A stretch of 61,928 nt of DNA, counting the filler, from Basidiobolus meristosporus CBS 931.73 (lineage: Eukaryota > Fungi > Basidiobolomycota), in the NCBI GenBank assembly GCA_002104905.1. It is 2 parts of 2 records of this genome, joined end to end, with 100 filler letters (N's around TTAATTAATTAA, not from the genome) between each part and the next. Parts side by side here need not be neighbours in the genome. Positions count along the whole stretch, not along the records: positions 31,285 to 61,928 come from MCFE01000847.1; 1 more part is not named here. One strand, 5' to 3'. A program made the translations under genes and the position numbers. The stretch's first letter is position 1; each line of letters starts with the position of its first letter. Of this stretch, positions 32,151-53,760 are shown piece by piece. A model generated the notes under the pieces. It was not told the DNA's origin. It made no database searches and saw only the letters and a program-made list of their open reading frames with translations.

Positions 32151-33604
32151 AGGCTCTGTTACATGGCTGCGTACAATTGACCAATGGATGACTGAAACTA
32201 ATTTTATGTGATATATGATACCTGTTGCTTGACTAGTATGAAGTTAGTGTCACAAATAAATCAATGGTAACTTGAGTAGCATAGAGAAAGCAGTAGAAGT
32301 ATGGCAACTTTCTGAGGGAATTTGCCATCCAGTCACGCAGCATTCCTTCCTCTTGCTTGTTGCAGCAATCATATCTTTGTGAATCTCAGGTATCTCACAC
32401 CAACAACATATGTGCTGAGCAGTTGGGAGCATGTTATCAGGAGGCAGTGGCTTCCAACAAAGAAGACCAATCCTTGACTGAGAATGAAGGCGACTTAGAT
32501 ATGAGTGATAGAGCACTGATAAATAAAGTTGTAAAGAATTAACATTTTTAATGACTGCTTTTCCAGTAAGGCCAATGCATTATTGAACCTTAAGTAGTTT
32601 GACAAAGCATAGGTCATCAATTAGACCCTCTGTCCACCCATCATGAATGTAAGAGATTTGCTTGGTGGTTATACTCTGACTTGCCAGCCTCATGTGCTTT
32701 GAAGTCATTAAAAGCCATTGTTGAGTACTATATAGAACAATGCACCTCAATATGGCTTCATGTTCCTGTGTGCTATTAGCCAGCCTTTGCTCCTTTCATA
32801 AGTAAGTAAACAACTGAGTTCCATACCAATCACACACAAGAATGAAGGCAGCAAGTGAAGCTAAGATATAAACATTTTGAATATCTTTATGTACATTCAG
32901 ATCTACCACCACATGCATATACAGAAAGTTTGGAACACAGAATTTCCAGCAGTTCTCATCTAGCATATGCACTCATTTATAGCACCTCTAGGCCACATCA
33001 AAGAGTCAGCTTGTAATTCTCAAGCTCATACTGGTTTATAAATTTTGCTTCAAATATTGTTTTATTTACCAAAGTGATATTGTGTAGCTATAGTAGCAGA
33101 GTCGCTTTCCTCTGCACTGAATACTTGCATCTTAAATTGAAACTATTGATTCATGACTAAGCAATACAGTTGTTCTATTGTTGGTATATATTGGTGACTA
33201 TTTATGGCTCAATCAATGTGGTATTATTTATGATATACATAGATCACTTTTGTCAGTATACACACATATTCTGAAGAGCATTACCAACATGCACTGGAAC
33301 TAAGGCATCTCACTCATTGCAATGTTATATAAAATCAAGGAGTGCTCAGCATCCTGAAGGAGCCCAACACTCAATACAATATGCCTAATTCACCAGGTTG
33401 CATGAGTATCCATACCTTGTGCACCATCAAGATTCTCAAGGATACATTGAATTCACCCTAATATAGATGGGCTAGTCTTTATGAGTAATGATGAAAGGCT
33501 GCTATGTATTGGTAATATCCATGGTAAGTGTTGAAGGAATGCCTAAAATTGTAGACAAAGGCAGCTAAACTTTATGTGAGCAACTTAGACACATGCTATC
33601 AGTT

Positions 33605-33947
33605 TGTTGCAGGAGTCTTGGAGATATTGGAGTTTATTGAGTAAGTAGATTATTTAGCATTCACTTGATGATATGTTTTAAGTAAAAGTAGTATTTGTAC
33701 TTTTGGACACTTTTTGCAAGACAAGCAAGTAAAATATACTTAGGAATGTTCCAAGAGTATGTGTGCAAAGTTTGGGGCTGTATTGGCTACTTGGAGACAT
33801 TTCATTTCCTAAGTGCCTGTACTTTGGGGTGGAGCTATTCCAAGTGAACCCCAACAAGGAACTTGGTTGGAGCTCTCTTAGACCTGTAGGCTATAATCTA
33901 AGTGATCAAGTTAGGTGGATGTTTAGGTGTAATTACAAGATTTACCA
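33605..33947 (-). repeat. Degenerate LTR of the C2/C3 family
   Basis: Roughly 75-80% similar to 23822-24170 throughout; no TSD match. Confidence 0.75.
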
Positions 33948-35574
33948 TGTAATATATTTGCTGTAGACAATAGTTTTGAGTGCTTGCATATCTAGTTCAT
34001 TGTCTTGAGCATACATTAGAAGACACAATGCAATATGCATGGAGCTCTGGGCCCAGTATACTTTGTCAGGAGTATAACCCCAGCTTCAGTGATCCAACCA
34101 AAAAGCACCTGTATAGTACACCCAGCCCTCCATTTGGTTTTTGATATTACCATATCCTATTCTCTTCTACTGCCTTTTGGTTCAGTCCAATCTTGACTAT
34201 ATAAGCTCCCAAGCTTCAGGTCTAGCAAATTTCTGGTTGAGGCAGAGAGATGATGGTAAAGAAAATGCTGTGTACCTGAATCATAAGCATTATCACTGTC
34301 AAAACTTAATTGTTCATATATGGTTAGAACTGATTAACAGAGTCAAAAAATCTTTTAATAGGTTCATTGTCTCATCATGGTAATGGTAAATGCCAAATGT
34401 TGACCTCTAAGTGCTCACTCAACTCAAGTGACCCTGGTGAAGCGGTACCAATGCAGTGCCCTTGCCTCCCCATGACAGTCTAAAATGCAATCCTGAACAA
34501 GGAGTGAAGGAACATACTGCGGGCCTTTACATCAAGAAATTGGCCAGGATTGACTTCATTACCCTGACATTCAATGCCGCCAACCAAGGCAAGAATGAAG
34601 GTCTCAACCACAGCGTGAAGGACTTAAATCTAGCTATCTTGGATGAGGCTGATACCTCTGCATCAGGAGGATATGCCACATGTGTCGTATAAACTTATTT
34701 TATGGGGAGAAGCTATGCATAGCAGTCATTTATTCAATGACTTGGAGTGTGGCGCCTTCCTGCTTAGTGATGGAACATGGGTACCAATGGGCTCGCATAT
34801 CAAACCCTCATTCAGGCAAGCTACACTGATAAATTAATTGTGGAAATCACGGAGTTTGATAGAACGCCCTCCAGGTTTTCGAGTGTATTGGCACAGTCAA
34901 TGCCGAACACATATAACTAATCAAAAGTGCGTATATTGCAACAAGAAAGCCCAAGGTAACCTCAACTAATCCATGTACTATCCACTCAATATTGTCGACT
35001 CTTGACAAATAACAAATAAATTTATTCTCACCATAACCATGACCGTCGTAGGTGCTCACCAATCAGCAACAACTGTAAATTCTTGTTATAACAGGTTAAT
35101 TTGATAAGCTTGACTGTAGTGACTGAGCTCGTAACTCGGCGCTGTTCTCTAGTTGCGGCAGGGTCAAGTCAACACCTTCCAGGGAATGAGTAAGAGACAC
35201 TTGGCTTAGAGGTGGAACAAAGATACCAGAGCGCGTGCATATTAAGCTCACAGGCCCAAATAAGCTACATTGATACAAATACCCATTGAAGTGGTCCGTT
35301 ATGACTTTGGAATCTATCGGCAGTAATTTTAAGCTCGGGGTTACTTCCCATTAGTAAATAATACGGACAGTTTAGGCAAACACAGATAATTTTGAATGTT
35401 ATTAAGGATATCATTGACCAGATCGCCCGCGTTCTTCACACTACGAAGTGCAATCTATACTGCGTAGCTTTGGTACGAAGAAGTATGGTAGCAAACGGTA
35501 AGGCAACCAGGTCAAATCAATCTAGCTTGCATAAAGCTAGTGCTATGAGCGAAGCCTAATTCAGTGGGATCGAG

Positions 35575-35587
35575 AAGGTGATATAAA
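35575..35587 (+). promoter_or_regulatory. Extended TATA motif AAGGTGATATAAA of gene A
   Basis: 35 bp before the ATG; recurs at ~38096, ~46269 and ~49689, in variant form at ~43190, and on the minus strand at 41729-41741. Confidence 0.6.
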
Positions 35588-35622
35588 TCGAGAAAATTCA
35601 CACGAGACTCCACCAGCCAGTC

Positions 35623-36147
35623 ATGCAGCTTTCCCTCCTTTTGCTAGTTTCCGCCATCGCTTCGTTGCAAGCAATCTCCGCTTCCCCACTCGGTGACTCC
35701 CAGGTAGCGTTCACCAATGAGCCGTGTGTCGAACAACAGGATGCTTGTTATCAGAACACTTCGGCCCCCAGTCAAGAATACCAGCCATCAACTGAGGAGG
35801 GGGATGATTCGGAGATGAGTGAGCCAATGCAAACAAGCGAGAGTTCGGGTGAGCAGCCAGGATTCTCTGGGTTGCAAGGGTTCGACATTTCCAACCTTCA
35901 ACCATCTCAGGCCTTACTGGACGACATCAATGGTCATTCCTCCAGTAAAGCCAATGCCTTGTCCAACTCAAACCAGTTCGACCAAGCGCAAGTCATCGAC
36001 CAAACCCTCTACCAGCCCAAGCAGCAACAGTCACAAATTATCATCACTCAGCCAGCAGCGCGTGCGCTTAGAGGTGGGTACAAGAAGTATAAGAGATCTG
36101 CTCGTCGCCACTTCAAAGTTAGATATTTCAGTGGAAACAGACATTAA
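35623..36147 (+). CDS. Secreted protein A1 (174 aa): signal peptide, PC-x6-CYQN loop, acidic/Q-rich body, cationic C-tail
   Basis: Hydrophobic N-terminus MQLSLLLLVSAIASLQAISA|SP; ORF conserved in the A2 copy (12 aa differences, no frameshift); TATA upstream. Confidence 0.85.
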   Translation: MQLSLLLLVSAIASLQAISASPLGDSQVAFTNEPCVEQQDACYQNTSAPSQEYQPSTEEGDDSEMSEPMQTSESSGEQPGFSGLQGFDISNLQPSQALLDDINGHSSSKANALSNSNQFDQAQVIDQTLYQPKQQQSQIIITQPAARALRGGYKKYKRSARRHFKVRYFSGNRH

Positions 36148-36487
36148 GTCTAGTAAAAGTAAATTTACCAAATAAAATGGGCAACATATTACTCGGTATA
36201 CTGATAATGTACAGTACTCAAGAATTTGCTGATATGCACACGCAGAAATAGCGTCCCTTATCGTTGTATATATTGAAGAGAATTATGGGCAGCGGTGATA
36301 GAACCATGTATATACACAGAGGCTGTCATTCCAGTACATGCGTTTTATATGTTACAGGTTTCCTCTGCAAAGTCCATAACAGAATGTAACAAGACTCACT
36401 TTATGCCCTCGGCTTAACCTTATTATATAGCCTCCCATGCTATATAGCGGCCTATGCAACTAACTTATTTCTCAGCTATTCTTCAGC

Positions 36488-36985
36488 ATGCGCTCTACTA
36501 CCATAACAGTGATTCTAAGCCTTGCCGCTCTTCAAGTTGCCGTTGCTGCCCCAATCGGCTGTTCTTCTCCATGCACTCGCGAGTATAGAAGGGTGCATTA
36601 TCGCAGCTTACCATGTGCACAGTATGCGAGTGATTGCTACCAAAACGCTCGAGTTTTGCCTGTCGTTAAGACAACGAATGTCCAATCCCCGTTATTGCGC
36701 CAGGTTTTCACCACTGTGACCAGAAAGCACGATAACCTGAACATTGCTAACGCCAACAGCAACAAAGGCTTCAATGTCAAGTATCAAGCAGGACCCAGTC
36801 TCGAACTGGAGGGCGGGGCCAAGGCATTAGAATACGCCAAGCAAAAGGGAGCGGAACACTCGGACGATAGCTCTTTCTCTCCCTACGTTCTGATGCAGCC
36901 CACCCAAGATGTACAATACACAACCCCTGTGGCAGAGATGCAATGCGTAGAAGATTGTCCAGAGCAAAACGTTCAATACAATTAG
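36488..36985 (+). CDS. Secreted protein B1 (165 aa, 6 Cys)
   Basis: Signal peptide MRSTTITVILSLAALQVAVA|AP; ORF conserved in B3 (5 aa differences); TATA-like motifs at ~36422-36447. Confidence 0.85.
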   Translation: MRSTTITVILSLAALQVAVAAPIGCSSPCTREYRRVHYRSLPCAQYASDCYQNARVLPVVKTTNVQSPLLRQVFTTVTRKHDNLNIANANSNKGFNVKYQAGPSLELEGGAKALEYAKQKGAEHSDDSSFSPYVLMQPTQDVQYTTPVAEMQCVEDCPEQNVQYN

Positions 36986-37324
36986 TGCGATGACATGAGC
37001 TGAAGATGTAGGTAGTCATCACCACGCTACAACTGAAAATTCTCAATCAATAAAATTCAAATGACATCCTTATATTTGTTGTTACTTATGATTAGCTTTT
37101 TACTTGCACGCACCTGTATCATGATCAGAGCTGCGGGCATTAATATTAGATTTTCGCTTACGTACTAAAATACTCACCCTCAGTCTTTAGCAATGCTGCC
37201 CTCCACCGAAAAAGTTGATATTAGAGAGACTGTCAGACTGCTCAGTGACTGTTAGCATTGTGATATCACCTCTTAAGGTTGCTGCAATCATTTTTTTTGC
37301 AAGCTTTTAGGAACACAATAAAAA

Positions 37325-37406
37325 TAATGAGGGTGGGGTTCGAACCCACGCCTCCGAAGAGACTGCGACCTGAACGCAGCGCCTTAGACCACTCGGCCAC
37401 CTCACC
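37325..37406 (-). tRNA. trnL(CAG): tRNA-Leu(CAG), intronless, G1:U72 variant
   Basis: GGTGAGG acceptor, D-loop GAGTGGTCTAAGG, anticodon stem CTGCG/CGCAG with loop TTCAGGT, long variable arm, GTTCGAA T-loop, A73, then a T5 terminator. Confidence 0.95.
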
Positions 37407-38372
37407 AGCTTATTTTTGGTACAAAGTACGGAGTCAGTCGATGTTAAGTGACATCAACGCGTACAAAGACTACCCAGTAGCCCAAAAGAAAGACAAATCG
37501 CACAACGTGATCAATATTTGAGCAGACAGCAAAAAACTGCGAGAACTCAAACCTCGTCTGTGGGATTAATAAGCAAAAAGACGGCAAGGATATTTGCGGC
37601 TGTAACAAAGGTTACTGCTGGAGAAGAGTAAGTTGCTATGGAATTTCCTGTACAGAAACCGTAATTTACAAGGTATTCAGTGCCATGGGGGAGTAGGGAT
37701 TATCTCGTTTAGCATTGGATATGCAGCAAAGTGCACCAGAGTGGTGTTACATCAATATTCAAAGGTAGCATATAGGTTTCATTCAGTTAGTTTGCACCCT
37801 TACTGACGCTAAAGTCTTCTTGCAGTGGCTCCGAACATCAGACATGCACCAAGGACTCGGACTGCGTTTTTGACAACACTAATTGCGCCAAGAACTTCTA
37901 AGCATCACTATTCCCAACGTCTACTTTTACTTTTTCAGCGGCTATTGCTAGCTTTATACTATAAAGCACTTGGTTGGCATTAAATGCTGATTACTATTTC
38001 GTATATGCACTGTCTCACATAAAGTAAAGTAGCAAACGGCGAGGCACCCAGGTTAAATGAATCTAGCTCGCATAAGGCTAATTGAGTGGGATCGAGAAGG
38101 TGATATAAATCGGGAGTACAAGAAGTCACGCCACTCTAAAGATACTAGGATTAGCACTAGTATGCTCCAGAAAATCATGGTGAGTTCCACAAAATAATGG
38201 AAGAAATTGAAAAAACAATGACTGAAGGGAATGCAAAATACCGATGGTACTCAAACAGCATAGTAATTGTGTGAGTAATGACCTGATTAATCCATGAAAT
38301 ATAAATTAGCAATTTTCCAGCTAACCCATTTTGTATGCTATCAACAGCCCACAAATACGTTATTCGCTCCAC

Positions 38373-38830
38373 ATGCGCTTCATTACTGTAGGCCTTGTCG
38401 CGAATCAAGTTACCGTTGCTGCCCCAATCGGTTGTTCTTCCCAATGCACTCGCGAGTATAGAAGGGTTCATTATCGCAGTTTACCATGTGTACAGTATGC
38501 GAACGATTACTACCAAAACGTTCGAGTTTTACCTGTCTTTAAGACGCCCAATGTCCAATCCCCGTTATTGCGTCAGGTTTTCACTACCGTGATCCGAAAG
38601 CACGATAGCCTGAACATTGCTAATGCCAGCAGAAAGAAAGGCTTCAGTGTCAAGCAGGGCCCAGTCTTGAACTGGAGGGTCGGGACAACGCATTAGAATG
38701 TGCCAAGCAAAAGGACTATAGTTCTTTCTCTCCCTACGTTCTGATGCAGCCCACTCAAGATGTACAGTACACAACCCCAGTAATAGAGACAATGCGTGAA
38801 AGAACAAAATATTCAATACACTCATTGTGC
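38373..38830 (+). pseudogene. B2, degenerate copy of secreted protein B
   Basis: Shortened signal peptide, loop Cys changed to Tyr, frameshift giving a stop at 38696; preceded by the A promoter plus a residual A tail (38030-38150). Confidence 0.8.
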
Positions 38831-40929
38831 TGACAATGGACACAGTGTACCAGTCCAAGAAGAATCGACATTTTACAATACCTCACAATGACACACACGG
38901 GAGAAACGGGGACGCTTTACATTTGGTTGGTGGCAAGGGTGAAATAGTGCTTGCAACATAGCCCGATAGAGAAGCTCAATCAGCGTTGTGCATCAACTAC
39001 CGCATCTGGAAAACTGTTTGAACGCCATTTTCAATGTTTATCTACTCATTCCATCGAACTGTAAATAATTGTACCGATATTTGGGGTCAAAATTCCGTAG
39101 ATGTGATTTTTGGTGTTATTCGTGAGACGCAAAACGACTCATACTACGATTTCTCAAGCAAGGGCTTGAAGCGTGCACACAGGAATGGCACTGTTCTCAC
39201 GTAGTTAGTTATTTCATAGTCAATTAATCTGGTCCGGAGTAGTATATATAATACTGTTATTTTCGTCGATTTCAATATTATGGGATTTGTCCACCAAATG
39301 AGTGAAAATTTTTATCGATTTTTCTCCTATAAATAGGAAGCATCTGTCGTTTGGTATCGTTACGACTGTACTTTACAGGATTATGTATATAGTACATTCC
39401 CAGTCTTTGTTTCCCAACAAAGACACTAAAGATGAGATGTAGTGCGCTGTCCGTAAAGGGAAGTGTGAGCAGTGGCCGATCGGTCTTTCGGGGCCATAGG
39501 ACCTGTTCAGTTGATGAACTTGCCGACTGATTATTCCAACAGCCTGGCGAGGACGGTCTGCACATTCTGACAGCTTGTTTTTACCCAACTATCATTGAAA
39601 AATCAAATCAAAATACCAATCTCTCCCGCTACATATTCATATTGAAAATCAGCAAGCAAAGAAAAGAAAAATTATTAAAATTTTGATTGCAAAATGACAT
39701 ACTTGTTTGATTACGATTACAGTTTTCTGATCATTAAAATCAAATTCATAACTGAATGTTTAAATGGGCACACAACTTTGCATAAAAGTAGGAAAAGAGT
39801 AAGTCGGTAGTCGGACTTTATTGTAGCGGCTACTGGTGACCATCCACTCAGACTTGCCAACCTCTGACTGCTCCAGTGCGCTTGGTTTTCGTTGCTCTGT
39901 TGCCAGCCTCACGCGTTCCCCAAGTCTTTAATAACCTTGCCATCTCACAATTACTTGAAGATGCCAATGTCAACACTAGGCTCCAGAGGACAACGCCCTC
40001 GACATGGATCGAAATCATCAGCAGGGACCCACTACTCAAGCCTTCACCCAACCAGTTCTCCAGAAGCTTGAGCTACAGATAGACGCCACTCTATCCAACT
40101 GCTCACTTGTTCGAAAATCAAAATATAACGAAAGATAGGATGAAGGGGCTAAAAGTTATGGGATTGAGATTATTTATTGTAATGTTTTAATATTTATTAC
40201 CATCGCTTTAAGCTACCTTTACTGTTCCTTAGTAGATCCGTACCACACTCACATACCTCAGGAATGACTGTATGGCGACGTAATGATTTTGGGCAATAGC
40301 TATCTGTGCCGGGGCATAAGGCCAGTGGGGGTGAGTACAGAGAGGCATTGTAATTATCAATCTACTTATCCAGCTTCTAGCTCGATCCCCTAGAACTATA
40401 TATCCCCTAGTACCACAGACACTGGTTCAAAGGTGAGGTCCAAAAGCGTAGGTGTTCTCTTAAAAATATGGCTTTCATTGCTGTATACTACACTCACATC
40501 CCAGTAACCATGGTCTGTGGGTAGACAGATGCGCCAAAGAGAACGCTCAATCCGGAAGAAGAGTGTTTGACACGGTTATTCTGGAGATTGCCGACTTGAT
40601 TCCCCATAGCTCATCTCATAATGGAGAGTGTGGAGTTTGGCTGGCATATTACCGTACTTCTATTTCTCCTCCAAAAAGGCTTCATTGAAATAAATGAACA
40701 AACCTGCGGTGTTATGTACGCAGTGGATTGTAGCCTCGATTCGGGTTTATCATCTCACTACTATGCCAATACTTAACCCAGAGACATGAATGTTCCAGCG
40801 TGAAAGTATGGACTGATGGCCTAACTGAATATTTTGTTGAGAAAGACAATGAACAGCACTTATTGATTCATTGTATACAAAGCATCTGTTTGCAATCTTG
40901 TGAAGACAAAAGTAGTTGCGCATAAACAA

Positions 40930-41173
40930 GTAGAGTCTTGGGATATCGGGTCTTCACTCAAACATGAGAGTATTTTCTATACTTCTACGTGTGTCCAAAT
41001 TTTGGGCTAAATTTTCTGTCTTAGGTAGCTCATATTCCAAGTATCTCTCAACAGGAATATGGCTGGAACTCTCTAAGTGTACAGAAAGCATAACTGCCAC
41101 ATGGTTACTAATAGTAATAGTGCAGATGGTAGATGACTTAATATAAGTGGCATCGTAGTGGCATTGTAGTAAC
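40930..41173. repeat. Highly degenerate Copia-LTR-like remnant
   Basis: Patches resembling the C2 LTR (GAGTCTTGGGATATCGG, TGTGTCCAAATTTTGGGCT); shares GTGTACAGAAAGCATA with ~53707; ends TAGTAACA. Confidence 0.35.
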
Positions 41174-41454
41174 ATTTCCAGGGTATATTTCTATGGGTAA
41201 AGTCTAAGTCGCTACAGACACTACATGGCAGTTGTACACGTATATCTGATCAAAAGCATTTAAAACTCTGCTCTCACGCTATACTTGGACAATCAAAGTA
41301 GCAGTTCGCACATATCTAATAAAGTGCAATGAGCATAACACAGCTGGGTCAAAGGAATGCGGACCGAACTCATTTATTTCACAATGCTTCAGCTAAATAT
41401 CCTTAACAGCAACATCTCCAAGAGTTCACCGGCTACGTAGGCACCAACCAAACC

Positions 41455-41673
41455 CTACGAGATTACCCATGTCTGGCTATCCACGCAGGCGGTTCCCTTT
41501 CTCCCTTCGAGGATCTGCTTGAAAGACAGCTCGCCAGTTCCGGGTCCTCTCCAAGTCCAGCGAATCCCTTTGACTGTGACTGAGGCGTAGTTCCCGTTGT
41601 TAGCTCTCTTGGCTCTGGCAATTTCTTCTCTGACATCAGCAGAGTACAAACGGGCTTCTTGATCGGATACCAT
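41455..41673 (-). CDS. Small orphan protein (72 aa, MVSDQEARLYSADVREEIARAKRANNG...WVIS)
   Basis: ATG in GCCATGG context 55 bp after the AAGGTGATATAAA motif; protein-like composition; single copy, no homology check possible. Confidence 0.5.
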   Translation of the reverse strand: MVSDQEARLYSADVREEIARAKRANNGNYASVTVKGIRWTWRGPGTGELSFKQILEGRKGTACVDSQTWVIS

Positions 41674-43236
41674 GGCTGAGGAAGTGGAGTGCAATAAGTC
41701 TTAAGACTGACAAGCCCACACCTGCTGCTTTATATCACCTTGTCTAGGTGGTGGCTTAGTGTTGTGTAATTATACTCACGGCTGCTTCATGTGCCCTTTT
41801 CTACTAAGTATAGCGGCTTCCCACCTAAAGTGCTGAGTCTTAGGCCAAGCTTGGAGAAATGATCTAGAAATCATGAATGACTACAGTTGAGGCCAAATCT
41901 GCAACTTTACCTGAGGAAACAAGTTTTACAACATGTTCGCTGACAATGATTCAATGAGTAATTGCACGGAAAATATATGAATCACTATCCTTCTCAACAT
42001 ACTTTTCTATTGAATAGCGAGGCAAGGAGCGTAATTAACTTCAATTCTGAGGCCATAGCCCATCGCCAAAATTCACCAACAGAAAGTTAACCCAAAGCCG
42101 TTAGAATCAATACACATAAGTCTCTATGGCCCTGGCTGATGTCTTACCGTACTGGCTAAACACAACCGCGAATAATTCCTTCTTGCCGGCACCGTCTCTA
42201 CGCACCATGCCGGTCATTAGCGACAAGGGTTTGCACCAATCAGCAATGAGTCTGTTCTTGTAATAACAGGTTATATAATAAACCTTCCCAAAAGAATGAC
42301 CGTGGTATTCGGTGGCTGAGCTCTTAATCCGACGCTGTACTCCATCTGTGGCAGGGTGAAGTTAGCAATTGATAAGAGTATGTGTCTAGCAAGAAAACAT
42401 CGCCATCCAAGCCATCGATTGTAGTAGCATAATTAAGTGAACAGTTACATTTGGCTTGTTTCTTGACAAATAACTAATTGAAAACGCGTGTACTACAATA
42501 AGAAATTCCAAAGCAGCCTCAACTATCCAAGGCACTATCCACTCAATATTCCCAACTCTTGGCGAACAGCTAATCAATTTATTCTCGCCTGTACTGTGCT
42601 GTACACCCCATGACAGTCGTATCGTTCACCAATCAGCAACAACCCTAGGTTCTTGTAATAACTGGTTAATTTAATAAGCCTGCCCCAAAGCTTGACTGTG
42701 GTGGCTGCTCTCCAGTTGCGGCAGGGTCAGATCAGCAATATATTTAATCATGTGTACAGCAAGAAAACAGCACTACCAAAGGACAATACCTTCCAGGCAA
42801 TGACAGGACTATTGTAAGAGACACTTGCCTTAAAGATGGAATAAAGATACCAAAAGTGCATGTTAAGCTCACAGGACTACACTGATACAAAGGAGTACCA
42901 AAACCCATTGAAATTGACCGCAACGACCTTGGACTTTCTCGACGGTAACCCTTAAGCTCATTAGTAAAAAATTACCAAAGTCCTTACTAACACGGTTAGT
43001 TATTGCAAAAACTGAGAGAATTTTGAATGATATTAAGGATATCATTGACCAGATCGCCTTCATTCTTCACACTTTGAAGTGCAGCCTATACTATGTAGCC
43101 CTGGTACGAAGAGGTAAAGTAGCAAAGGTTAAATCAATCTAGCTCGCATAAAGCTAGCGCTATGAACAAAGCCTAATTGAGTGGGATCGAGGTGATATAA
43201 ATCGGCAAAATTCGCATGAGACTCCACCAGCCAGTC

Positions 43237-43761
43237 ATGCAGCTTTCCTTCCTCTTGCTAGTTTCCGCCATCGCTTCGTTGCAAGCAATTTCCGCTACCC
43301 CACTCGGTGAATCCCAGGTGGGCTACACCAATGAGCCATGTGTTGGACAACAGGGTGCTTGTTATCAGGACACTTCGGCCCCCAGTCAAGAATACCAGCC
43401 ATCAACTGAGGAGGGGGATGATTCGGAGATGAGTGAGCCAATGCAGACAAGCGAGACTTTGGGTGAGCAGCCAGGATTCTCTGGGTTGCAAGGGTTCGAT
43501 ATTTCAAATTTACAACCATCCCAAGCCTTGTTGGACAACATCAATGGCCATTCCTCCAGTAAAGCCAATGCCCTGTCCAACTCAAACCAGTTCGACCAAG
43601 CGCAAGTCATCGACCAAACCCTGTACCAGCCCAAGCAGCAACAGCCACAAATTATCATCACTCAGCCAGCAGCGCGTGCGCTTAGAGGTGGGTACAAGAA
43701 GTATAAGAGATCTGCTCGTCGCCACTTCAAAGTTAGATATTTCAGTGGAAACAGACATTAA
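43237..43761 (+). CDS. Secreted protein A2 (174 aa)
   Basis: Intact paralog of A1; the ORF-track start 43216 is an extra upstream ATG (CACGAG in A1 vs CATGAG here). Confidence 0.85.
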   Translation: MQLSFLLLVSAIASLQAISATPLGESQVGYTNEPCVGQQGACYQDTSAPSQEYQPSTEEGDDSEMSEPMQTSETLGEQPGFSGLQGFDISNLQPSQALLDNINGHSSSKANALSNSNQFDQAQVIDQTLYQPKQQQPQIIITQPAARALRGGYKKYKRSARRHFKVRYFSGNRH

Positions 43762-44116
43762 GTCTAGTAAAAGTAAATTTACCAAATAAAATGAGCAACA
43801 TATTACTCGGTATACTGATGATGTACAGTACTCAAGAATTTGCTGATATGCACACACGGAAACAGTGGCACTTATCGTTGTACACAATGTCATTGTGAGT
43901 ATTGAAGAGAAGTATGGGCAGCGGTGATAGAGCCATGCATATACACAGAGGCTGTCATTCCAGTACATGCGTTTTATATGTTACAGGTTTCCTCTGCAAA
44001 GTCCATAACAGAATGTAACAAGACTCACTTTATGCCCTCGGCTTAACCTTATTATATAGCCTCCCATGCTATATAGCGGCCTATGCAACTAACTTATTTC
44101 TCAGCTATTCTTCAGC

Positions 44117-44614
44117 ATGCGCTCTACTACCATAACAGTGATTCTAAGCCTTGCCGCTCTTCAAGTTGCCGTTGCTGCCCCAATCGGCTGTTCTTCTCCA
44201 TGCACTCGCGAGTATAGAAGGGTGCATTATCGCAGCTTACCATGTGCACAGTATGCGAGCGGTTGCTACCAAAACGCTCGAGTTTTGCCTGTCGTTAAGA
44301 CGACGAATGTCCAATCCCCGTTATTGCGCCAGGTTTTCACCACGGTGACCAGAAAGCACGATAACCTGAACATTGCTAACGCCAACAGTAATAAAGGCTT
44401 CAATGTCAAGTATCAAGCAGGACCCAGTCTCGAACTGGAGGGTGGGGCCAATGCATTAGAATATGCTAAGCAAAAGGGAGCGGAACACTTGGAAGATAGT
44501 TCTTTCTCTCCCTACGTCCTGATGCAGCCCACCCAAGATATACAATACACAACCCCTGTGGCAGAGATGCAATGCGTAGAAGATTGTCCAGAGCAAAACG
44601 TTCAATACAATTAG
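44117..44614 (+). CDS. Secreted protein B3 (165 aa)
   Basis: Intact paralog of B1. Confidence 0.85.
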   Translation: MRSTTITVILSLAALQVAVAAPIGCSSPCTREYRRVHYRSLPCAQYASGCYQNARVLPVVKTTNVQSPLLRQVFTTVTRKHDNLNIANANSNKGFNVKYQAGPSLELEGGANALEYAKQKGAEHLEDSSFSPYVLMQPTQDIQYTTPVAEMQCVEDCPEQNVQYN

Positions 44615-44983
44615 TGCGATGGCATGAGCTGAAGATGTAGGTAGTCATCACCACGCTACAACTGAAAATTCTCAATCAATAAAATCCAAATGACATTCTT
44701 ATACTTGTTGTTACTTGTGATTAGCTTTTTACTTGCACACACCTGTATCATGATCAGAGCTGCGAGCATTAATATTAGATATTCGCTTACGTACTAACAT
44801 ACTCACCCTCAGTCTTTAGTGATGCTGCCCTCCACCGAAAAGCTTGATATTAGAGAGAATGTCTGGCAGGATACCGGATTGACTTTGGTAACACAAAGAT
44901 TCGAGATTGACAGACTGCCCAGTGACTGTTAGCATTGTGATATTTCCTCTTATCGTTTTTGTGCAAGCTAAGAGTAAAATGGA

Positions 44984-45065
44984 TGATGAGGGTGGGGTTC
45001 GAACCCACGCCTCCGAAGAGACTGCGACCTGAACGCAGCGCCTTAGACCACTCGGCCACCTCACC
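44984..45065 (-). tRNA. trnL(CAG): tRNA-Leu(CAG), intronless, canonical G1:C72
   Basis: Identical to 37325-37406 except C72; T4 run downstream. Confidence 0.97.
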
Positions 45066-45419
45066 AGCTTGTACTTGGTCATTACGAAAGAGTTTGAAAG
45101 CAAATATTCTTGAAGTACTACCTTCGCTCGAAGCAAGCATCATAAAGTATCTTTACCTATTGTTTTGTCGTAATTGTCTAGATGATACTGAGTAGTGAGT
45201 AATGGTCGTTCAAGACACTGTTGTTATCGATGCACAAATGTAAGAGATATGGCTTAGTAATGAATCCAATCCAAGAAAAGTACTACTTTATACCGGATGA
45301 ACCAGACTGTTTAAATCATTTCTGGGTTCTTCCCAAACGTGATTGATATTAAAGTTGCATGTTGTGTGACTTATAAACCAAGAAGGTATAATAACGAATA
45401 TAAAGGCCGTAGAGGAGTG

Positions 45420-45910
45420 TCTACTCAAGATATCCTCTTAGCCAGTGCTTTGATACTTGCATCCTCTTTTGCCGCTCCTCTTGAATGCAACCAACCCAAT
45501 ACTACGGCAACCCCCGAGTATGTAGAGCTATATAAAAACGTAAAGGCGTGTAATGAAGAATTTCTATCTTCATTCTGGACACGAAGTAAGGTTCGCAGAA
45601 TGCGTGAGGATGATCAAGGAGCTTTCTCAAAGCCTAGGTACACAGAGTGGAAGCGTGGCAAAGCGTGTTCTTGATGCAACTAATGGGATTGACGTTTTTT
45701 TTGTCGCCCTGGATCGCTTTTAGAAGACAGAAAAAGCCGGGAGAACTTAAGCCTAGTCTGTGGAGTTACCCAGCAAAAAGGCGGCAATGATATTTGCGGT
45801 TGTAACAAAGATTGCTGCGGGAGAGGAGCCAGTTGGCACGGAACTTCCCGTGCGGAGACAGTAACTTTCAAAGAATTTAGTGGCATGGTGGAGTAGGGAT
45901 TATCTCGTAT
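45420..45910 (+). pseudogene. Possible decayed third secreted-protein gene (C)
   Basis: TATAAA at ~45399, then LLASALILASSFAAPLEC with no ATG; the downstream part aligns with 37525-37700 and the two copies have stops at different positions. Confidence 0.35.
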
Positions 45911-46389
45911 AGTATTGGATATGCAGCACAAAATGGTATTACATCAACAATATACAAGGGCAGCATATAAGTATCATTCGGTCACTCTTACTAACGCTTA
46001 AGTCATGTTGTAGTGGCTCCGAATATCAGACACGTACCAAGGACTCGGACTGTTGCGCCAAGAACATCTAAGCATCACTATCGCCAACGTCGCCTTTCCC
46101 TTTCTTCAGTGTCTACTTCTAGCTTTATACTATAAAGCATCTGGTTGACATTAAATGCTGATTACTATTTCGTGTATGCACTGTCTCACTTACGAGAATC
46201 ACCAGCTAGGCATAAGGATCATTTTTAAGAAATAGCAACACCCAGGCTAAATCAAGAGTGGGATCGAGAAGGTGATATAAAGCGATAGTGTGAGTAATGA
46301 CCTGATATGTCAACGAAAGGTGAGATATGAAATAGCAATTTGTCCAGCCAAGCCTATATACCAGCCCACAAATACGTTATTCACTTCAC

Positions 46390-46823
46390 ATGCGCTCTTT
46401 TACCGTAGCAGTGATTCTAGACCTTGCCGCAATCGGCGGTTACTCTCCATTCACTCGCGAGTATAGAGGGGTTCATTATCGCAGTTTACCATGTGTTTAG
46501 TATGCGAATGGTTGCTACCAAAACGTTCGAGTTTTGCCTATTGTTAAGTCGTCCAATGCTCAATCCCCGTTATTGTGCCAGATTTGACCACGGTGACCAG
46601 AAAGCACAATAACCTGAACATTGCTAATGCCAACAGCAATAAAGGCTTCAATGTCAAGTATCAAGCAGGACCCAGTCTCGAACCGGAGGGTGGGGCCAAC
46701 GCACTGAAATACGCCAAGCAAAAGGGAGCGAAACACCCGGACAATAGCTCTTCGTATCCCTACGTTCTGATGTAGTCCACCCAAGATGTAGCAGAGACCG
46801 AACAAAATGCTCAATACAATTAG
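46390..46823 (+). pseudogene. B4, degenerate copy of secreted protein B
   Basis: Deletion in the signal peptide, TAG at 46498-46500, further indels; the A promoter lies directly upstream with A fully deleted. Confidence 0.85.
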
Positions 46824-47464
46824 TGTGCTGACAATTGCGCCTATCAGATAAATCAACCTAAACTGAGGATATTGGGTAGGCAAAACAAATAAACATTCTT
46901 TGCACGACTACTCTACTCTCACAGTCTCATTGACTATCAATCCATCGCAGATACAGTGTACTGGTCCAAAAAAAATCGACAGACACCAAAGGAATAGGGG
47001 CACTCCACATTTGGTTGGTGGCAAGAGAGAAGTCCAAACAGCGTTGTGTATCAACAACGCATTGAGATACTTTGGGATGTCAGCAAGCTCTTGTGAGCGC
47101 CAGTTTCAACGTTTACATACTTACTCCATCGAACTTTAAAATAAATGTATCAATATTGGGAGGTAAATTGCCGTTTAAGTCAACATACCATTGTATTATT
47201 CGTGAGACGCAAAACGACTCGTACTACGATCTTTCAAGCGTGCACTCAGGAATGGCACTTTGCTTACGTAGTTGGTTAATTCATAGTCAATGTTTGCAGT
47301 CCCGAGCAGTATACAGAATACAGTTATCCAACATTACCCAAGAAACATAGTTTAACTTAGATTATTTACTCAAGATTCAAAAACTCTTAGCTGACTGGCA
47401 GATCTGCTAATTCTGAAGAAATATATTGCTATACATTGCGGGTACAAATCTCTACATTTTGTTT

Positions 47465-48442
47465 CTATGCTACAAGTTCTGGATACTTCACCAAATCTTC
47501 ACTCAGCTTCCAAAGTTGTTGGGCATTAGAGTCATCCAAAGCATAAGGCCGCGCGGTCTCATTGCTAACCTTTGCATCTTCAAGATATGAGCCAGACTGA
47601 TTTACAATCGAGGGGTCAAAGGCAGCAACAATGTGAGTTGCCGCTCCCTGAGGGATGGTTTTCCAAGTAAGGGATTTCAGAACCTCTTCTGACATCCAGG
47701 GCTGGCCATCAGCATCCAGGAAGTTCTCCTTAAATTCGTCGGCGAGATTCAAGTGATTTGCTAAGTTTGTGGATATAACACCAGGGTGAAGACTGAAGGC
47801 CACTAGTCCCTTACTTTTGTAGCGGTTGCTCAACTCCTTTGTAAAGAGAATAATGGCGGTTTTAGACTGACCATAGGCCTGCCATTTTTCGTACGTTCTG
47901 CCGTCGGAAAACCCAGGATCTGCAAAGCGGATTTTGGATATTTGATGGCCTGAGCTAGATACATTAACTACGCGTGGACCTTGGGAGGAAGCCAAGAGCC
48001 GATCTAGTATCAGGTTTGTGAAAAGGAAAGGTGCCAAGTAATTAATCCCAAACTGCGCTTCAAACCCATCCTTTGTTCTACTGTATGGTGCAGCCATGAT
48101 TGCGGCATTGTTGATTAGCACGTCAATAGGCTCGGTATATTCATTCACCTCCTTGGCTGCATCTCGAACCGAATCCAAAGAGGCAAGATCGATCACGAGC
48201 GATCGTAGGTTTGCACTTGGTGTCTCTTGCTTGATTTTCCCAATGGTCTCGTCGAGAGAACTCTGTCTCCTGCCTGCAACGATCACCAGCTTGGCACCGT
48301 ACTTTGCAATTACTCTGGCGGCTTCGGCACCAAGGCCACCCCAAGTAGCACCTGTGATAAGCACAGTTTTTCCCTTGATGCTGTCAGAGAACACCATAGC
48401 GGCCTCCTCAGATGTAGTGTCTTTTCCGAAAGTGTGGGACAT
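47465..48442 (-). CDS. Short-chain dehydrogenase/reductase (classical SDR, retinol dehydrogenase/WWOX-like), 325 aa, intronless
   Basis: TGATWGGLG (TGxxxGxG), NNAA, VSS, YGQSK (YxxxK), HPG; the track start is a GTG, and ATG 48442 has ATCAAAATG context. Confidence 0.93.
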   Translation of the reverse strand: MSHTFGKDTTSEEAAMVFSDSIKGKTVLITGATWGGLGAEAARVIAKYGAKLVIVAGRRQSSLDETIGKIKQETPSANLRSLVIDLASLDSVRDAAKEVNEYTEPIDVLINNAAIMAAPYSRTKDGFEAQFGINYLAPFLFTNLILDRLLASSQGPRVVNVSSSGHQISKIRFADPGFSDGRTYEKWQAYGQSKTAIILFTKELSNRYKSKGLVAFSLHPGVISTNLANHLNLADEFKENFLDADGQPWMSEEVLKSLTWKTIPQGAATHIVAAFDPSIVNQSGSYLEDAKVSNETARPYALDDSNAQQLWKLSEDLVKYPELVA

Positions 48443-49078
48443 TTTGATTGACTCAGTCTTCAGGCGAAGGTGGCAATAAATAGGAGTCACCAAGTGCAGG
48501 CCCATGTGATCATCTTTCTCAGCAGCTTTTTGTGGGTGGTGAGCGGCCACTTAGAATGTAATGTTCCCAATTCGTGGGACATCCGCAGCATTTACTGGAA
48601 GTCTACTTGTGTGCCCAATCACACTCGGATCTGATGGTAATGTCGCGGTATTGGGTATATACATAGGCCACATACAGAAGCTTATCAACATGAACAGTTG
48701 GCAGTCATATCACCCGAAATCCGCAGTAAGGTTACTGACCCAAATTTACGGATAATCAATACCCGAGTTTGTGGAAAATCACAGCCCATGACAAGCTGAC
48801 TATTCCATATGGAGAATGTTTCCGATTGATTGCGGATTGATGTTTAGATCTATGCAAACGTTCCCGTGGTTAAGAGTTTAGCCAGCAAATTTGTTTAGTT
48901 GGCTAATGTGCATATTAATCGTCAATAAACAACTACTAGAGGCAAATGTGAATATCAATCATCATTAAACAGCTACTATATTGCCACGTAGATATCCATT
49001 TTGAAGCCGCGGAAAAATCTATGTAATTGCTAATAAACTCGGATATGCTGTGCCGCTTAACATACCAAATGATATGTA

Positions 49079-49427
49079 TGTTGTAAGAGTCTTGGAGATA
49101 TTGGAAGTGATTGGGAGAACAAGTAGATTATGTGGTTTTCACTTGATGATTTATCGAATGTAAAAGTAGTATTTATACTTTTACCTGGTCTTGGCATTAC
49201 AAACACGTAGAATAGGTTAAGGAAGGTCCTAAGAACATGTGTGCAAAGTTGGGGACTGTTTGAACAACTTTGTGAATTTTCATGTTCTTGGTACCTGGTA
49301 TCTTGGTGAAAATATTCTAAGTAAATCCCAACAAGGAATTTGGTCAGTATTCTCTAAGATTTGAGGGTAATGATCTAAGTGACTAAGTTAGGTGAATATT
49401 TAGGTGGAATTACGAATTTTTACAACA
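49079..49427 (-). mobile_element. Solo LTR of the C2/C3 Copia family
   Basis: 349 bp, TGTTGTAA...TTACAACA; flanks ATGTA/GTGTA (4/5 TSD). Confidence 0.93.
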
Positions 49428-49736
49428 GTGTAGAGTAACGATGCTAACCCACTACGAAATGTTGACCACAAACAGTTACCATTGTCAATAAGGCAATGCA
49501 CAACCTCACTACATTGCATTGGCCATGATTAACCAACAGTACTTATAGAGGATATCTCTTTCAACCAGATCACCCTCATTCTTAACACTTTGAGGTGCAG
49601 CTTATACTCTATTTCCTTGGTACGAAGAGGTAAAGTAGCAAAGGTTAAATCAATTTAGCTTGCACAAAGCTAATTGAGTGGGATCGAGAAGGTGATATAA
49701 ATCGGGAAAGTTCGCACAAGACTCCACCAGCCAGTC

Positions 49737-50185
49737 ATGCAGCTTTCCTTCCTCTTGCTAGTTTCCGCTACCCCACTCGGTGACTCCCAGGTAGCCGACA
49801 CCAATGAGCCATATGTCGAATAATAGGGTGCTTGTTATCAGGACACCTCGGTCCCCACTCAAGAATACCAGCCATCAATTGAGGAGGGGGATGATTCGGA
49901 GATGGGTGAGCCAATGCAGACAAGCGAGACCTCGGGTGAGCAAACAGGATTCTCTGGGTTGCATGGGTTCGATATTTCAAATTTACAACCATCCCAAGCC
50001 TTGCTGGACAACATAAATGGCCATTCCTCCAGTAAAGCCAATGCCTTGTCCTACTCAAACCAGTTCGATCAGGGGCAAGTCGTTGATCAAGCCCTCTACC
50101 AGCCCAAGCAGCAACAGCCACAAATTATCATCACTCAGCCAGCATGAAGTATAAGCGATCTGCTTGTCGCCACTTCAAAGATACT
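49737..50185 (+). pseudogene. A3, inactivated copy of secreted protein A
   Basis: 27-bp deletion between TCCGC microhomologies in the signal peptide, Cys changed to Tyr, TAA at codon 29, deletion in the cationic tail. Confidence 0.88.
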
Positions 50186-50419
50186 AGGATTAGCAATAGA
50201 AAATAAAGACGAAATATAAGGTTTGGTCATGGTGAGTTCCACCAAATAATAGAAGAAAATTGAAAAAATAGGAGAATGCAAAATACGGATGATACTCAAA
50301 CAGCATTGTAATAGTGTGAGTAATGACCTGATTAATCCATGAAATATATAATAGCATTTTGGCCAGCTAAACCATATCATATGCTATATAACAGCCCACA
50401 AATACGTTATCCACTCCAC

Positions 50420-50824
50420 ATGCGCTTTATTACCGTAGCAGTAATTCTAGGCCATGCCACCATTCAAGATGCCGTTGATGCCCCAATCGGCTGTCATTCT
50501 CCATGCACTCGCGAGTATAGAAGGGTGCATTATCGCAGCTTACCATGCGCACAGTATGCGAACGATTGCTACCAAAACGTTCGAGTTTTGCCTGTCGTTA
50601 AGACGTCGAATGCCCAATCCCCGTTATTGCTTCAGGTTTTCAGCACGGTGACCAGAAAGCACGATAGCCTGAACATCGCTAATGCCAGCAGCAATAAAGG
50701 CTTCAACGTCAAGTATCAAGTAAGACCCAGTCTCGACCTGGAGGGTGGGGCCAACGCGCTGGAATACGCCAAGCAAAAGGAAGCGAAAACCCAGATAATA
50801 GCTCTTCATATCTCTACGTTCTGA
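50420..50824 (+). pseudogene. B5, copy of B with a damaged signal peptide and frameshifted C-terminus (134 aa)
   Basis: All four N-terminal Cys kept; H/D substitutions in the signal; frameshift removes the C-terminal CxxxC. Confidence 0.7.
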
Positions 50825-53417
50825 CGCAGTCCACCCAAGTTGTACAATACACAACCCCTTAGCAGAGGCAGAACAATACGTTCAATACAATTGGTGTGCT
50901 GACAGTTCCCCCCAACAGATAAATCAACCTAAACGGAGGACTTTGGGTAGGCAAAACAAATAAACATTCTTTGCACGACTACTCTACTCTCACAGTCTCA
51001 TTGACTATCAATCCATCGCAGATACAGTGTACTGGTCCAAAAAAAATCGACAGACACCAAAGGCATAGGGGCACTGCACATTTGGTTGGTGGCAAGAGAG
51101 AAGTCCAAACAGCGTTGTGTATCAACAACCGCATTTGAAGATACTTTGGGATGTCAGTAAAGCCATGTTCAATGTTTACATACTTACTCCATCGAACTTT
51201 AAAATGAATGTATCGATTTTGGGAGTTAAATTGCCGTTTAAGTCAACATACCATTGTATTATTCGTGAGACGCAAAACGACTCGTACTATGATCTTTCAA
51301 GCAAGGACTTGAAGCGTGCACTCAGGAATGGCACTGGTTATTTCATAGTCAATGTTAGCAGTCCACAACAGTACATGTAATTCATTTATTTTCGTCGATT
51401 TCAATATTATGGGATTAGGCAACGAAATGAGTGAAAATTTCTATAAATAATAAATAGAGAGCATCTGTACTTTACAGGATTATGCATATAGTACATTCCC
51501 AGTACGCTCATTCTGACAGCTTGCTGTTATCCAACTATCATTCAAAATATCAATTTATATTGCTACAAAATCACTTTGAAAGGAAAAATGCTTAAAATTT
51601 TGATTGCAAAATGACATACTTGTTTGATTACGATTACAGTTTTCTGATCTTTAAAATCAAAATTCATAACTGAATGTTTAAGCGGACACACAACTTTGCA
51701 TAAAAATCGGAAAAGAGTAAGTCGATAGTCTCACTTTGTTTTAGTGCCTACTGATGACCATCCACTCAGACTGCTCCAGTGCGCTTGGTTCTAGTTGCTC
51801 TGTTGCCAGCCTCACGCGTTCCCCAAGTCTTTAATAACCTTGCCATCTCGCAATTACTTGAAGATGCCCATGTCAACACTAGGCTCTAAAAAACATGGAT
51901 AGAAATCATCAGCAGTGACCCACTACTCAAGCCTTCACCCAACCAGTTCTCCAGAAGCTTGAGCTACAGATTGACGCCACTCTACCCAACTGTTAACTTA
52001 TTCAAAAATCAAAATGAAGGGGCAATGAGCTTATTTATTGCAATGCTTTAATATGTATTATCAACGCTTTAAGCTTCCTTTGCTGTTCCTCCCTACGGAT
52101 TCTCGTATATTGCACAAGAATATGTAAAATATTTGATGTTGTAGTACGCACTGGGCGGGTTACTGTATTGATATATGGACCAAGTAGATCCATACCACAC
52201 CCACATACCTCAGGAATGACTGTATGGTGACACTCCTGCATATGCAAGCCTTTCATAATGATTTTGGTCAATAATTATCTGTGCCGGGGCATAGGTTCAG
52301 TGGGGGGGGGGTAAAGAGAGGCATTGTAATTATCAACTAGCTCAATTCCCTAGTACTACAGACACTATTTCGATGTCATTTCCGGGTGAAGTCCTCACTC
52401 CGGTCCAAACGCCTACGTGTTCTCTTTGAAATACGCCTTTCTTTGCTGTACACCACAATCCCATCTCAATAATTATGGTCAATGGGTAGGCAGATGCTCC
52501 AAAGAAAACGCTCAATCCGGAAGAAAAGTGTTTGACACCGTTATTCTGGAGATTACAAACTCAATTTCTATAGCTCATCTTATGACGGAGTAGCGCAGAA
52601 GATCTACACAATGATTCATCAGAAAGTGTGGAGTTTGCTTAGCATATGAACGCAGACACCGAAATATTGAGGATGCGTAGTGTTACCGTACATCTATTCC
52701 TCATCCAACAAGGCTTCATTGAAATGAATGAACAAACCTGCAGTGTTAGATGTACTGACATCGCTTTCAGTTTTCTTCCTACCGTTGCAGTGACTGCATC
52801 CTCAATCTGAGTCTATCATCTCAGCTTGCCACTGCACCTACAATGCCAATACTTAGCCCACAGCTGATGCAACACTTTAGAGACTCAAATAACCGGAAAG
52901 TTCCAGCTTTGAAATATAGACTGATGGCCTGATTGAATAACTGATGTGCTTTGACTAGGATAATGACTATAATTCTGACAATGATGAGCACTTGTCAATC
53001 CATAGAATGGAGAAGCTCTAGTAACCAGACAGCTGTGCCCAGTGCTGCTATCACAGCACTTCATACTGCTTAGTTGGTTTGGGCACCTGAGGAATACAAA
53101 GTGAAACATTGGTAGCTTACATTGCTCACTCCTCCAGTACTCAGTTGTGCAGCATTGAATGACAGCATATATATGGCTAATAGGATGACTTATTCTACTT
53201 CAGGCAAGGCAAAAATGGCAAAACCAGCACCATTCAAGAGTCTAGGAATTAAACTAAGCAACAGACTTGAGATGTCCAAGGTGTAGTGACACAACTTGCA
53301 AAGTAAAAGCAACTGCTTGTAGGCTGAAGAAGTATTTAGGCTCTTGTGAGGACACAAATAGCTGAGCATAAGCAAATTGGATGAAAATAAGAGTGGTTGT
53401 GCAGACTATGGGTATAA

Positions 53418-53760
53418 TGTTTCAAGAGCCTTGGAGATACTGAAAGTGAATGGGAGAACAAGCAGAATTTGCAGTCTGCTCCTAATTACTCATCAAATAT
53501 AAGAGTGTTATCTTTACTTTGACATGGTCTTAGCAATGCTAACATGAAGAATACAATTATGATGGTTCTTAGAACATGTGTGTAAGGTTTGGCGCTGTTT
53601 GGACAACTTTCAAATATTTCATGTATTATGTATCTGATACTTGTTCTTAGTGACTAAGTACAAGGTCAATGACTAGAGCTCTCAAAGATCTGTATGTTAC
53701 AACCTAGGTGTACAGAAAGCATAGCTGTTACATATCTATGAGATATTTCAGACTTGGAAT
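53418..53760. repeat. Degenerate Copia-family LTR
   Basis: TGTTTCAAGAGCCTTGGAGATACTGAAAGTG and GAACATGTGTGTAAGGTTTGG resemble the C2 LTR. Confidence 0.55.

Follow-up and report, generated by a model that had tools for sequence, protein, structure and literature searches.

A tandem array of two predicted secreted protein genes in Basidiobolus meristosporus, probably shaped by block duplication and decay

We analyzed a scaffold of Basidiobolus meristosporus CBS 931.73 (MCFE01000847.1, 30.6 kb), a member of a gut-associated fungal genus that occasionally causes human and animal disease. The scaffold belongs to a stretch of 61,928 nucleotides (nt), filler included, hereafter the window, and all coordinates without a locus name are positions in this whole stretch. 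It carries two kinds of small genes, A and B, repeated as A-then-B modules in very different states of preservation. The initial annotation of this DNA had described five such modules, whose A and B members appeared to decay together, and had proposed that the two genes encode a co-expressed two-component secreted system. The A and B elements, located by open reading frame (ORF) and pattern searches, tblastn, three-frame translation and DNA alignment, are as follows.

32330..32700 (approximate), plus strand: A0, degenerate relic of the A family with stop codons and frameshifts (tblastn, three-frame translation)
35562..35586, plus strand: A-type promoter element of A1, a 25-mer with a TATA sequence (pattern search, alignment)
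35623..36147, plus strand: A1, intact, 174 amino acids (aa) (ORF, family alignment; ratio of nonsynonymous to synonymous divergence, dN/dS, 0.18 vs. A3)
36488..36985, plus strand: B1, intact, 165 aa (ORF, alignment; dN/dS 0.14 vs. B3)
38050..38175, plus strand: A leftover of module 2, comprising the promoter 25-mer (38084-38108) and the last ~40 nt of a coding sequence of the A5 type, the remaining A being deleted
38373..38860, plus strand: B2, pseudogene (DNA alignment of the five B copies)
43237..43761, plus strand: A3, intact, 174 aa if read from the ATG homologous to that of A1 (ORF, tblastn, dN/dS)
44117..44614, plus strand: B3, intact, 165 aa (ORF, alignment, dN/dS)
46256..46280, plus strand: A leftover of module 4, the promoter 25-mer alone, the A coding region being wholly gone (alignment, pattern search)
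46390..46850, plus strand: B4, pseudogene (DNA alignment)
49676..50230, plus strand: promoter element of module 5 (49676-49700) and the A5 pseudogene from 49737 (alignment, pattern search)
50420..50867, plus strand: B5, damaged (DNA alignment)

Thus, A is represented in the five modules of the window by two intact genes, a pseudogene, and two leftovers of its promoter, and B by two intact and three damaged copies. The five B copies (at 36488, 38373, 44117, 46390, and 50420) all lie where they had been reported, each behind an A gene, an A pseudogene or a leftover of the A promoter, and both intact A genes are paired with an intact B (A1–B1 and A3–B3), the ORF of A3 having an alternative opening at 43216. 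All elements of the five-module array are therefore present, but its modules are not independent of each other, and a sixth A copy, the relic A0, lies outside the range reported earlier; no B relic follows A0 according to tblastn and three-frame translation.

The A-type TATA-containing 25-mer occurs exactly at 35562, 38084, 46256, and 49676 (four occurrences observed, zero expected by chance), and the promoter of A3 is the same 25-nt element with a 3-nt deletion according to the alignment. Because the 25-mer recurs in modules 2 and 4, these modules can be seen to have retained the promoter of A while losing its coding region. DNA alignments of the five B copies and of the A copies show the lesions. 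B2 has lost 12 nt of the signal-peptide region and carries a frameshifting deletion of 7 nt; in B4, 24 nt of the signal-peptide region are deleted, cysteines have been lost, a TAG stands in frame, and a further single nucleotide is missing; A5 lacks 27 nt of the signal-peptide region and 25 nt close to the 3′ end, and has in addition a Cys-to-Tyr replacement and two stop codons side by side. As B5 has only signal-peptide substitutions and a single 1-nt frameshift near codon 123, its conserved core remains readable.

Comparison of the scaffold with itself (self-blastn) shows that the modules belong to larger repeated blocks. A unit with the order A-B-tRNA-X-(deleted A)-B, where X is a spacer, is present twice, at 34909-39315 and 42466-47327, and in its first part 35190-37234 matches 42814-44863 at 90.8% identity. 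The stretch made up of module 5 and the flank downstream of it (49564-52748) likewise corresponds to module 2 and its flank (38050-40714); further matching pairs are 38175-40714 with 50227-52748, 39661-40714 with 51578-52748, and 46425-47239 with 50479-51302. The locus thus consists of repeated multi-gene blocks with graded identity, as expected of a tandem array formed by segmental duplication. B1 and B3 are 97% identical, and identity among B2, B4, and B5 is 79-86%; the latter three have a common 5′ flank, differing from that of B1 and B3. Judging by identity and flanks, the modules are of two lineages: modules 1 and 3 appear young or homogenized and are intact, and modules 2, 4, and 5 appear older and decaying. 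Intact copies under purifying selection therefore stand beside pseudogenes with differing lesions (B2, B4, B5, and A5), which is the pattern of birth-and-death evolution.

This history bears directly on the claim that A and B decay together. In the window, a missing or broken A is indeed always accompanied by a damaged B (three out of three modules, according to the DNA alignments). However, with two intact/intact and three damaged/damaged modules, the one-sided Fisher test gives p = 0.10 at n = 5 even if independence is assumed, and the modules are not independent, so the correlation does not serve as a sign of partnership. The initial annotation had itself mentioned whole-module decay as another possible source of the correlation, and the two block lineages explain it adequately: as the intact and the broken modules are separate lineages, the correlation arises mainly from whole-block history.

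The duplicated blocks and their surroundings contain several other genes and repeats.

37324..37407, minus strand: tRNA-Leu(CAG), copy 1 (ARAGORN; Rfam tRNA, 53.3 bits)
37517..38018, no strand assigned: spacer X of the larger duplicated unit, matching 45718-46189 at 78% (self-blastn)
39362..39570, plus strand: U3 small nucleolar RNA gene in the flank of module 2 (Rfam RF00012, 50.7 bits)
39800..40099, minus strand: signal recognition particle (SRP) RNA gene in the block common to modules 2 and 5 (Rfam RF00017, 169.6 bits)
44980..45066, minus strand: tRNA-Leu(CAG), copy 2 (ARAGORN; Rfam)
47465..48550, minus strand: short-chain dehydrogenase gene, unrelated, between modules 4 and 5 (Pfam adh_short, 1.4e-30)
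49077..49427, no strand assigned: long terminal repeat (LTR)-like repeat, 95% identical to 57906-58256, which adjoins the copia element (self-comparison)
51718..51990, minus strand: another SRP RNA copy, with a lower score, flanking module 5 (Rfam, 109.3 bits)
58268..61927, minus strand: Ty1/copia-type retrotransposon with gag, integrase, and reverse transcriptase (Pfam RVT_2, 1.9e-86; rve; Retrotran_gag_2), interrupted by the scaffold end

The blocks duplicated together with modules 2 and 5 contain two SRP RNA copies, the second of which (51718-51990) is probably degraded, and the U3 gene; therefore, segmental duplication at this locus copies housekeeping RNA genes as well. The copia element and the LTRs beside the duplicated blocks agree with the earlier suggestion that the array undergoes birth and death among transposable elements. 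Two older LTR-like relics, with about 75% identity, lie at 33602-33945 and 53417-53624. The tRNA-Leu(CAG) copies are 98.9% identical (the match of the second copy being 44983-45070 in self-blastn); each lies ~340-370 bp downstream of an intact B and is conserved far above the adjoining spacer (78-80%). At 45339-45674 on the plus strand there is an ORF of 111 aa with a signal-peptide-like segment, which has no counterpart in the first larger unit and no match in Pfam.

Public gene models do not reflect this organization. K493DRAFT_363113 (P0087, 328 aa; 35623-37521) is a chimera that fuses A1 with a portion of B1 and an antisense translation of tRNA-Leu; P0041 splices past the stop codons of A5, and P0014 is a truncated B5 of 134 aa, trimmed around the lesion. 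The public annotation is hence unreliable at the locus, with one model chimeric and two spliced around stop codons. On other scaffolds, P0006, P0025, and P0056 join a frameshifted A to B, which indicates that already-degenerate modules have been copied elsewhere in the genome.

The A protein consists of a predicted signal peptide, a two-Cys motif, an acidic stretch, a conserved A core, and a basic C-terminal tail; in the B protein, a predicted signal peptide is followed by a basic N-terminal part with four cysteines, then by a conserved B core, and finally by an acidic C-terminal part that includes a C-x3-C motif. In A, the N-terminal part has a net charge of -14, the core is uncharged and rich in Gln and Asn, and the tail has a net charge of +11. 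The signal peptides reported earlier for both proteins are made likely by hydrophobic cores of 2.5-3.0 near the N-terminus (Kyte-Doolittle scale, 9-residue window), with small residues before the predicted cleavage site, and by the name “Secreted protein” given to several relatives in UniRef; residues 3-19 are modelled by AlphaFold2 as a lone helix. Comparison of the B family with the A family by hhalign aligns residues 1-55 (probability 79%, E 1.6e-5), from which it follows that the two proteins have a related leader, that is, the signal peptide and the two-Cys motif.

Both genes are under strong constraint. Among intact paralogues, dN/dS is 0.10-0.25 (A1 vs. A3, 0.18; B1 vs. B3, 0.14), synonymous sites being often saturated between distant ones, and in the family alignments (roughly 15-18 relatives per family from two species) the A and B cores are nearly invariant across B. 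meristosporus and Basidiobolus ranarum. Given these dN/dS values and the near-invariant cores, A and B are real, constrained protein-coding genes. Comparison of the 130 nt upstream of the genes across loci shows that TATA-type elements are conserved within each family and that A and B have their own promoters; no upstream motif common to A and B stood out in these 130 nt at the several loci compared.

The absence of any recognizable domain, noted earlier, was borne out by all searches. Pfam yielded no family above the threshold for A or B, either for the window proteins or for their relatives; profile searches against sequences of the Protein Data Bank (PDB) gave only chance-level matches (E 0.37-4.3), and protein Atlas look-ups gave no usable match. 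AlphaFold2 with the family alignments predicted no confident fold (mean predicted local distance difference test score, pLDDT, 41 for B and 53 for A), the signal-peptide helix alone being predicted. Two candidate assignments of B were rejected: Myticin-prepro (PF10690) scores 17.8 and 17.3 bits (14-14.5 bits in relatives), compared to the gathering cut-off of 28.5, and the CBM1 label of some B relatives in UniRef has no CBM_1 match at E up to 1 in P0003, P0007, P0065 or the window B genes.

The protein collection contains about 30 A and 30 B relatives; B. meristosporus accounts for nearly all of them, and B. ranarum for a few. The A-core profile searched against 1.84 billion representative proteins retrieved 28 proteins, and all ten of those looked up for organism come from B. 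meristosporus or B. ranarum. P0073 (3445 aa), a further hit of the profile, was rejected as a low-complexity artefact, being a repetitive protein that matches many unrelated Pfam families. Hence, as far as these searches see, the A/B family is predicted to be restricted to Basidiobolus; literature searches found no paper on it.

Other loci from B. meristosporus (L004-L007) and contigs from B. ranarum (L001-L003) show how often the two genes go together. A-then-B adjacency occurs at the divergent B. meristosporus loci L004-L007, as do B-B runs. The order is A-B-A-B in L004 and A-B-B-B in L006 and L007, with intact B genes following each other without an intervening A and minus-strand genes of a third family, C, interspersed. 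In L005, an intact A (P0039) stands between two frameshifted B copies, so the rule that losses go together does not hold there. In B. ranarum, five to six tandem B genes without A were found on L001, about nine tandem A genes without B on L002, and three tandem genes of 255 aa, each encoding the B core followed by the A core, on L003. The expectation that A and B would always be linked in relatives thus appears to fail on L001 and L002, both of them short contigs that end inside the arrays. Judging by these arrangements, A/B adjacency is common yet not obligatory, and A and B are not an obligate adjacent pair.

The third related family, C, is absent from the window. Its members, of ~125 aa, have a signal peptide, a segment resembling the A core, an acidic stretch, and a tail rich in Cys, Arg, and Tyr, and the genes lie downstream of B on the opposite strand.

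L004 6849-7283, minus strand: C gene
L006 8862-9233, minus strand: C gene
L006 13386-13766, minus strand: C gene
L007 10884-11264, minus strand: C gene

L006 and L007 have the same order C, A, B, C, B, B, C, B, with synonymous divergence (dS) of about 0.025, and look like allelic or very recently duplicated regions of the assembly.

The B and A cores also occur together in single, uninterrupted ORFs in both species. For four of these, three nucleotides per residue and the stop codon account exactly for the length of the gene.

L008 3770-4735: fused ORF P0066, B. ranarum
L009 5900-6985: fused ORF P0063, B. ranarum
L011 5003-6106: fused ORF P0082, B. ranarum
L010 4656-5726: fused ORF P0081, B. 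meristosporus

Further fusions in B. ranarum are P0068, P0030, and the three 255-aa genes of L003. P0066, P0063, P0082, and P0068 are composed of an A-like leader, the B core, a long spacer, the A core, and an A-type tail, with P0066 aligning both to the window B (1e-18) and to the window A (3e-19); P0081 is a complete B in frame with an A devoid of the signal peptide. In all fused polypeptides, the B core precedes the A core. The presence of both parts in one uninterrupted ORF is suggestive, not conclusive, of the two cores acting in the same place and process, a suggestion weakened by the fact that same-strand neighbor genes can also fuse through simple deletion. The data would also fit an origin of A and B from a single longer ancestral gene, of which each would be a partial copy complementary to the other. 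In the tree of the A core and tail, 12 out of 20 inner branches are weak, leaving the direction, fusion or fission, undecided; the A part of the P0081/P0065 fusion groups with B. meristosporus A genes, with weak support (62/93).

Taking all this into account, the locus is in our judgment likely a birth-and-death array in which tandem genes of a Basidiobolus-restricted protein family have multiplied and eroded through block duplication. The proteins would be small, secreted, and apparently disordered, assembled from a few conserved modules, namely, the leader, the B core, the A core, and a basic tail rich in Lys, Arg, and Tyr: gene A would then be the leader, an acidic spacer, the A core, and the tail, and gene B, a related leader, the B core, and an acidic Cys-containing tail. 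The array has grown by duplication of multi-kilobase blocks that carried the tRNA-Leu, SRP RNA, and U3 genes along, with modules 1 and 3 as the young or homogenized pair under purifying selection and modules 2, 4, and 5 as the older decaying lineage. Since the A and B cores are repeatedly joined in one polypeptide, A and B probably have their roles in one and the same setting outside the cell, most likely as surface or matrix components, or as pro-proteins releasing the basic tail.

Several observations weigh against parts of this interpretation. Modules 1 and 3 have 98% identity in the A-B spacer (36261-36560 vs. 43890-44189) but 78-80% in neutral parts of the same larger unit, a difference suggestive of gene conversion or of the A-B segment having been duplicated again later; the order of the duplication events is accordingly tentative. 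The secretion of A and B is predicted from their sequences alone. The low AlphaFold confidence may reflect the shallow alignments (15-18 sequences) and not true disorder, and the A-only and B-only arrays on the short contigs L001 and L002, which end within the arrays, could be genomic neighbors.

The two-component system put forward by the initial annotation can be formulated as A and B being expressed from neighboring promoters and secreted together as a hetero-complex, e.g., of oppositely charged partners forming an adhesive or surface layer, so that the loss of one makes the other useless. The recurring A-then-B adjacency at divergent B. meristosporus loci speaks for it, as do the occurrence of the B and A cores in single ORFs of several architectures in both species, the complementary charges (acidic N-terminal part and basic tail in A; basic N-terminal part and acidic C-terminal part in B), and the damaged B behind each damaged or missing A in the window. 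However, the latter correlation is not significant and comes from non-independent copies, L005, L006, and L007 provide counter-examples, partners are broken or absent elsewhere, up to homogeneous A-only and B-only arrays in B. ranarum, the TATA-type promoters are separate and have no evident common upstream motif, and deletion alone can fuse same-strand neighbors without any functional link. The prediction of a complex between mature A and mature B returned “no answer” (ipSAE 0.00) and counts neither for nor against binding. The proposal thus draws its support from the fusions and the recurring adjacency, both of them indirect evidence, and not from the correlated decay, and a true two-component system seems to us unlikely.

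Still less probable is that A and B are pro-proteins cut at dibasic sites by a Kex2-like protease, the active products being cationic peptides (the 15-16-residue A tail and the basic Cys-containing N-terminal part of B) with antimicrobial or signaling roles in the gut or soil niche. Both species have kept the dibasic site in front of the A tail, and a near-invariant motif closes the tail itself; B is laid out as many precursors of antimicrobial peptides, with a signal peptide, a cationic Cys-containing part, and an anionic part, and has the sub-threshold match to Myticin-prepro. Kex2-processed secreted precursors are, moreover, widespread across fungi (PMC7329392), which counts in favor of such processing. 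Yet conservation is strongest in the uncharged A and B cores and not in the candidate peptides, A has one conserved dibasic cluster only (residues 154-162), with no repeated peptide units separated by dibasic sites according to the alignment and sequence inspection, and the Myticin match, at 17.8 bits, is well below the cut-off of 28.5.

One could also imagine, as a rather remote speculation, that a single ancestral secreted protein (leader, B core, spacer, A core, and basic tail), which persists in B. ranarum, was split, and that its halves re-associate extracellularly via their cores and opposite charges, building a Basidiobolus-specific surface or adhesive material, e.g., on conidia; if true, it would represent natural gene fission into an extracellular two-part assembly.

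Finally, that the ORFs are non-functional, being repeated non-coding or transposon-derived sequence open by chance in two copies, is scarcely credible: the locus is indeed full of transposable elements and repeats, some public gene models here are wrong (the P0087 chimera), and degenerate modules with the same frameshift stand on several other scaffolds, but the selection analysis (dN/dS 0.10-0.25, saturated synonymous divergence of distant paralogues) largely refutes this reading, both families with their invariant cores are kept in a second species, A and B contain no transposon domains according to Pfam, and the genes all have TATA-type promoters that are conserved from locus to locus.

As genome biology, the birth-and-death array is thus a case of ordinary block duplication and decay and not a demonstrated two-component system. 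Its interest lies in a previously undescribed Basidiobolus-restricted family with two strongly conserved cores, which occurs both split and fused and numbers dozens of copies in each genome. As abundant predicted-secreted proteins under purifying selection, its members are reasonable candidates for roles at the surface, in adhesion or in interaction with the niche, and possibly genus-specific markers.

Several known systems can be compared with this family. In comparative genomics, the Rosetta-stone principle is established for two separate genes of one genome that appear fused in another. Similarly, A and B are separate neighbors in the window and a single ORF in B. ranarum and B. meristosporus; unlike typical Rosetta-stone pairs, the fused and split forms occur in the same genomes, and A and B have a related leader and hence may both derive from one ancestral gene as partial, mutually complementary copies, rather than being unrelated partners.

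The layout of B, with a signal peptide, a cationic Cys-containing part, and an anionic C-terminal part, resembles the Myticin pre-proprotein (PF10690), the sole Pfam model scoring on B; the number and spacing of cysteines differ, and with its score under the cut-off B is not a member. In turn, A resembles fungal Kex2-processed precursors (PMC7329392) in its signal peptide, disordered body, conserved dibasic site, and short basic C-terminal segment, and differs from them in having no tandem peptide repeats flanked by dibasic sites, its own processing being putative.

In genomic setting, the array resembles the lineage-specific clusters of small secreted proteins, regarded as candidate effectors, that have expanded through tandem duplication in transposon-rich regions of fungal genomes: signal peptides, no known domain, restriction to a genus, and tandem copies with pseudogenes near retrotransposon remains. 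Thousands of unannotated secreted-protein groups of such kind have been found in zygomycete genomes (PMC9391592). Unlike effector clusters, A and B are under purifying (dN/dS 0.10-0.25) and not diversifying selection, have few cysteines and low-confidence, mostly coil AlphaFold models, and belong to a gut-associated saprobe, for which no host target is implied.

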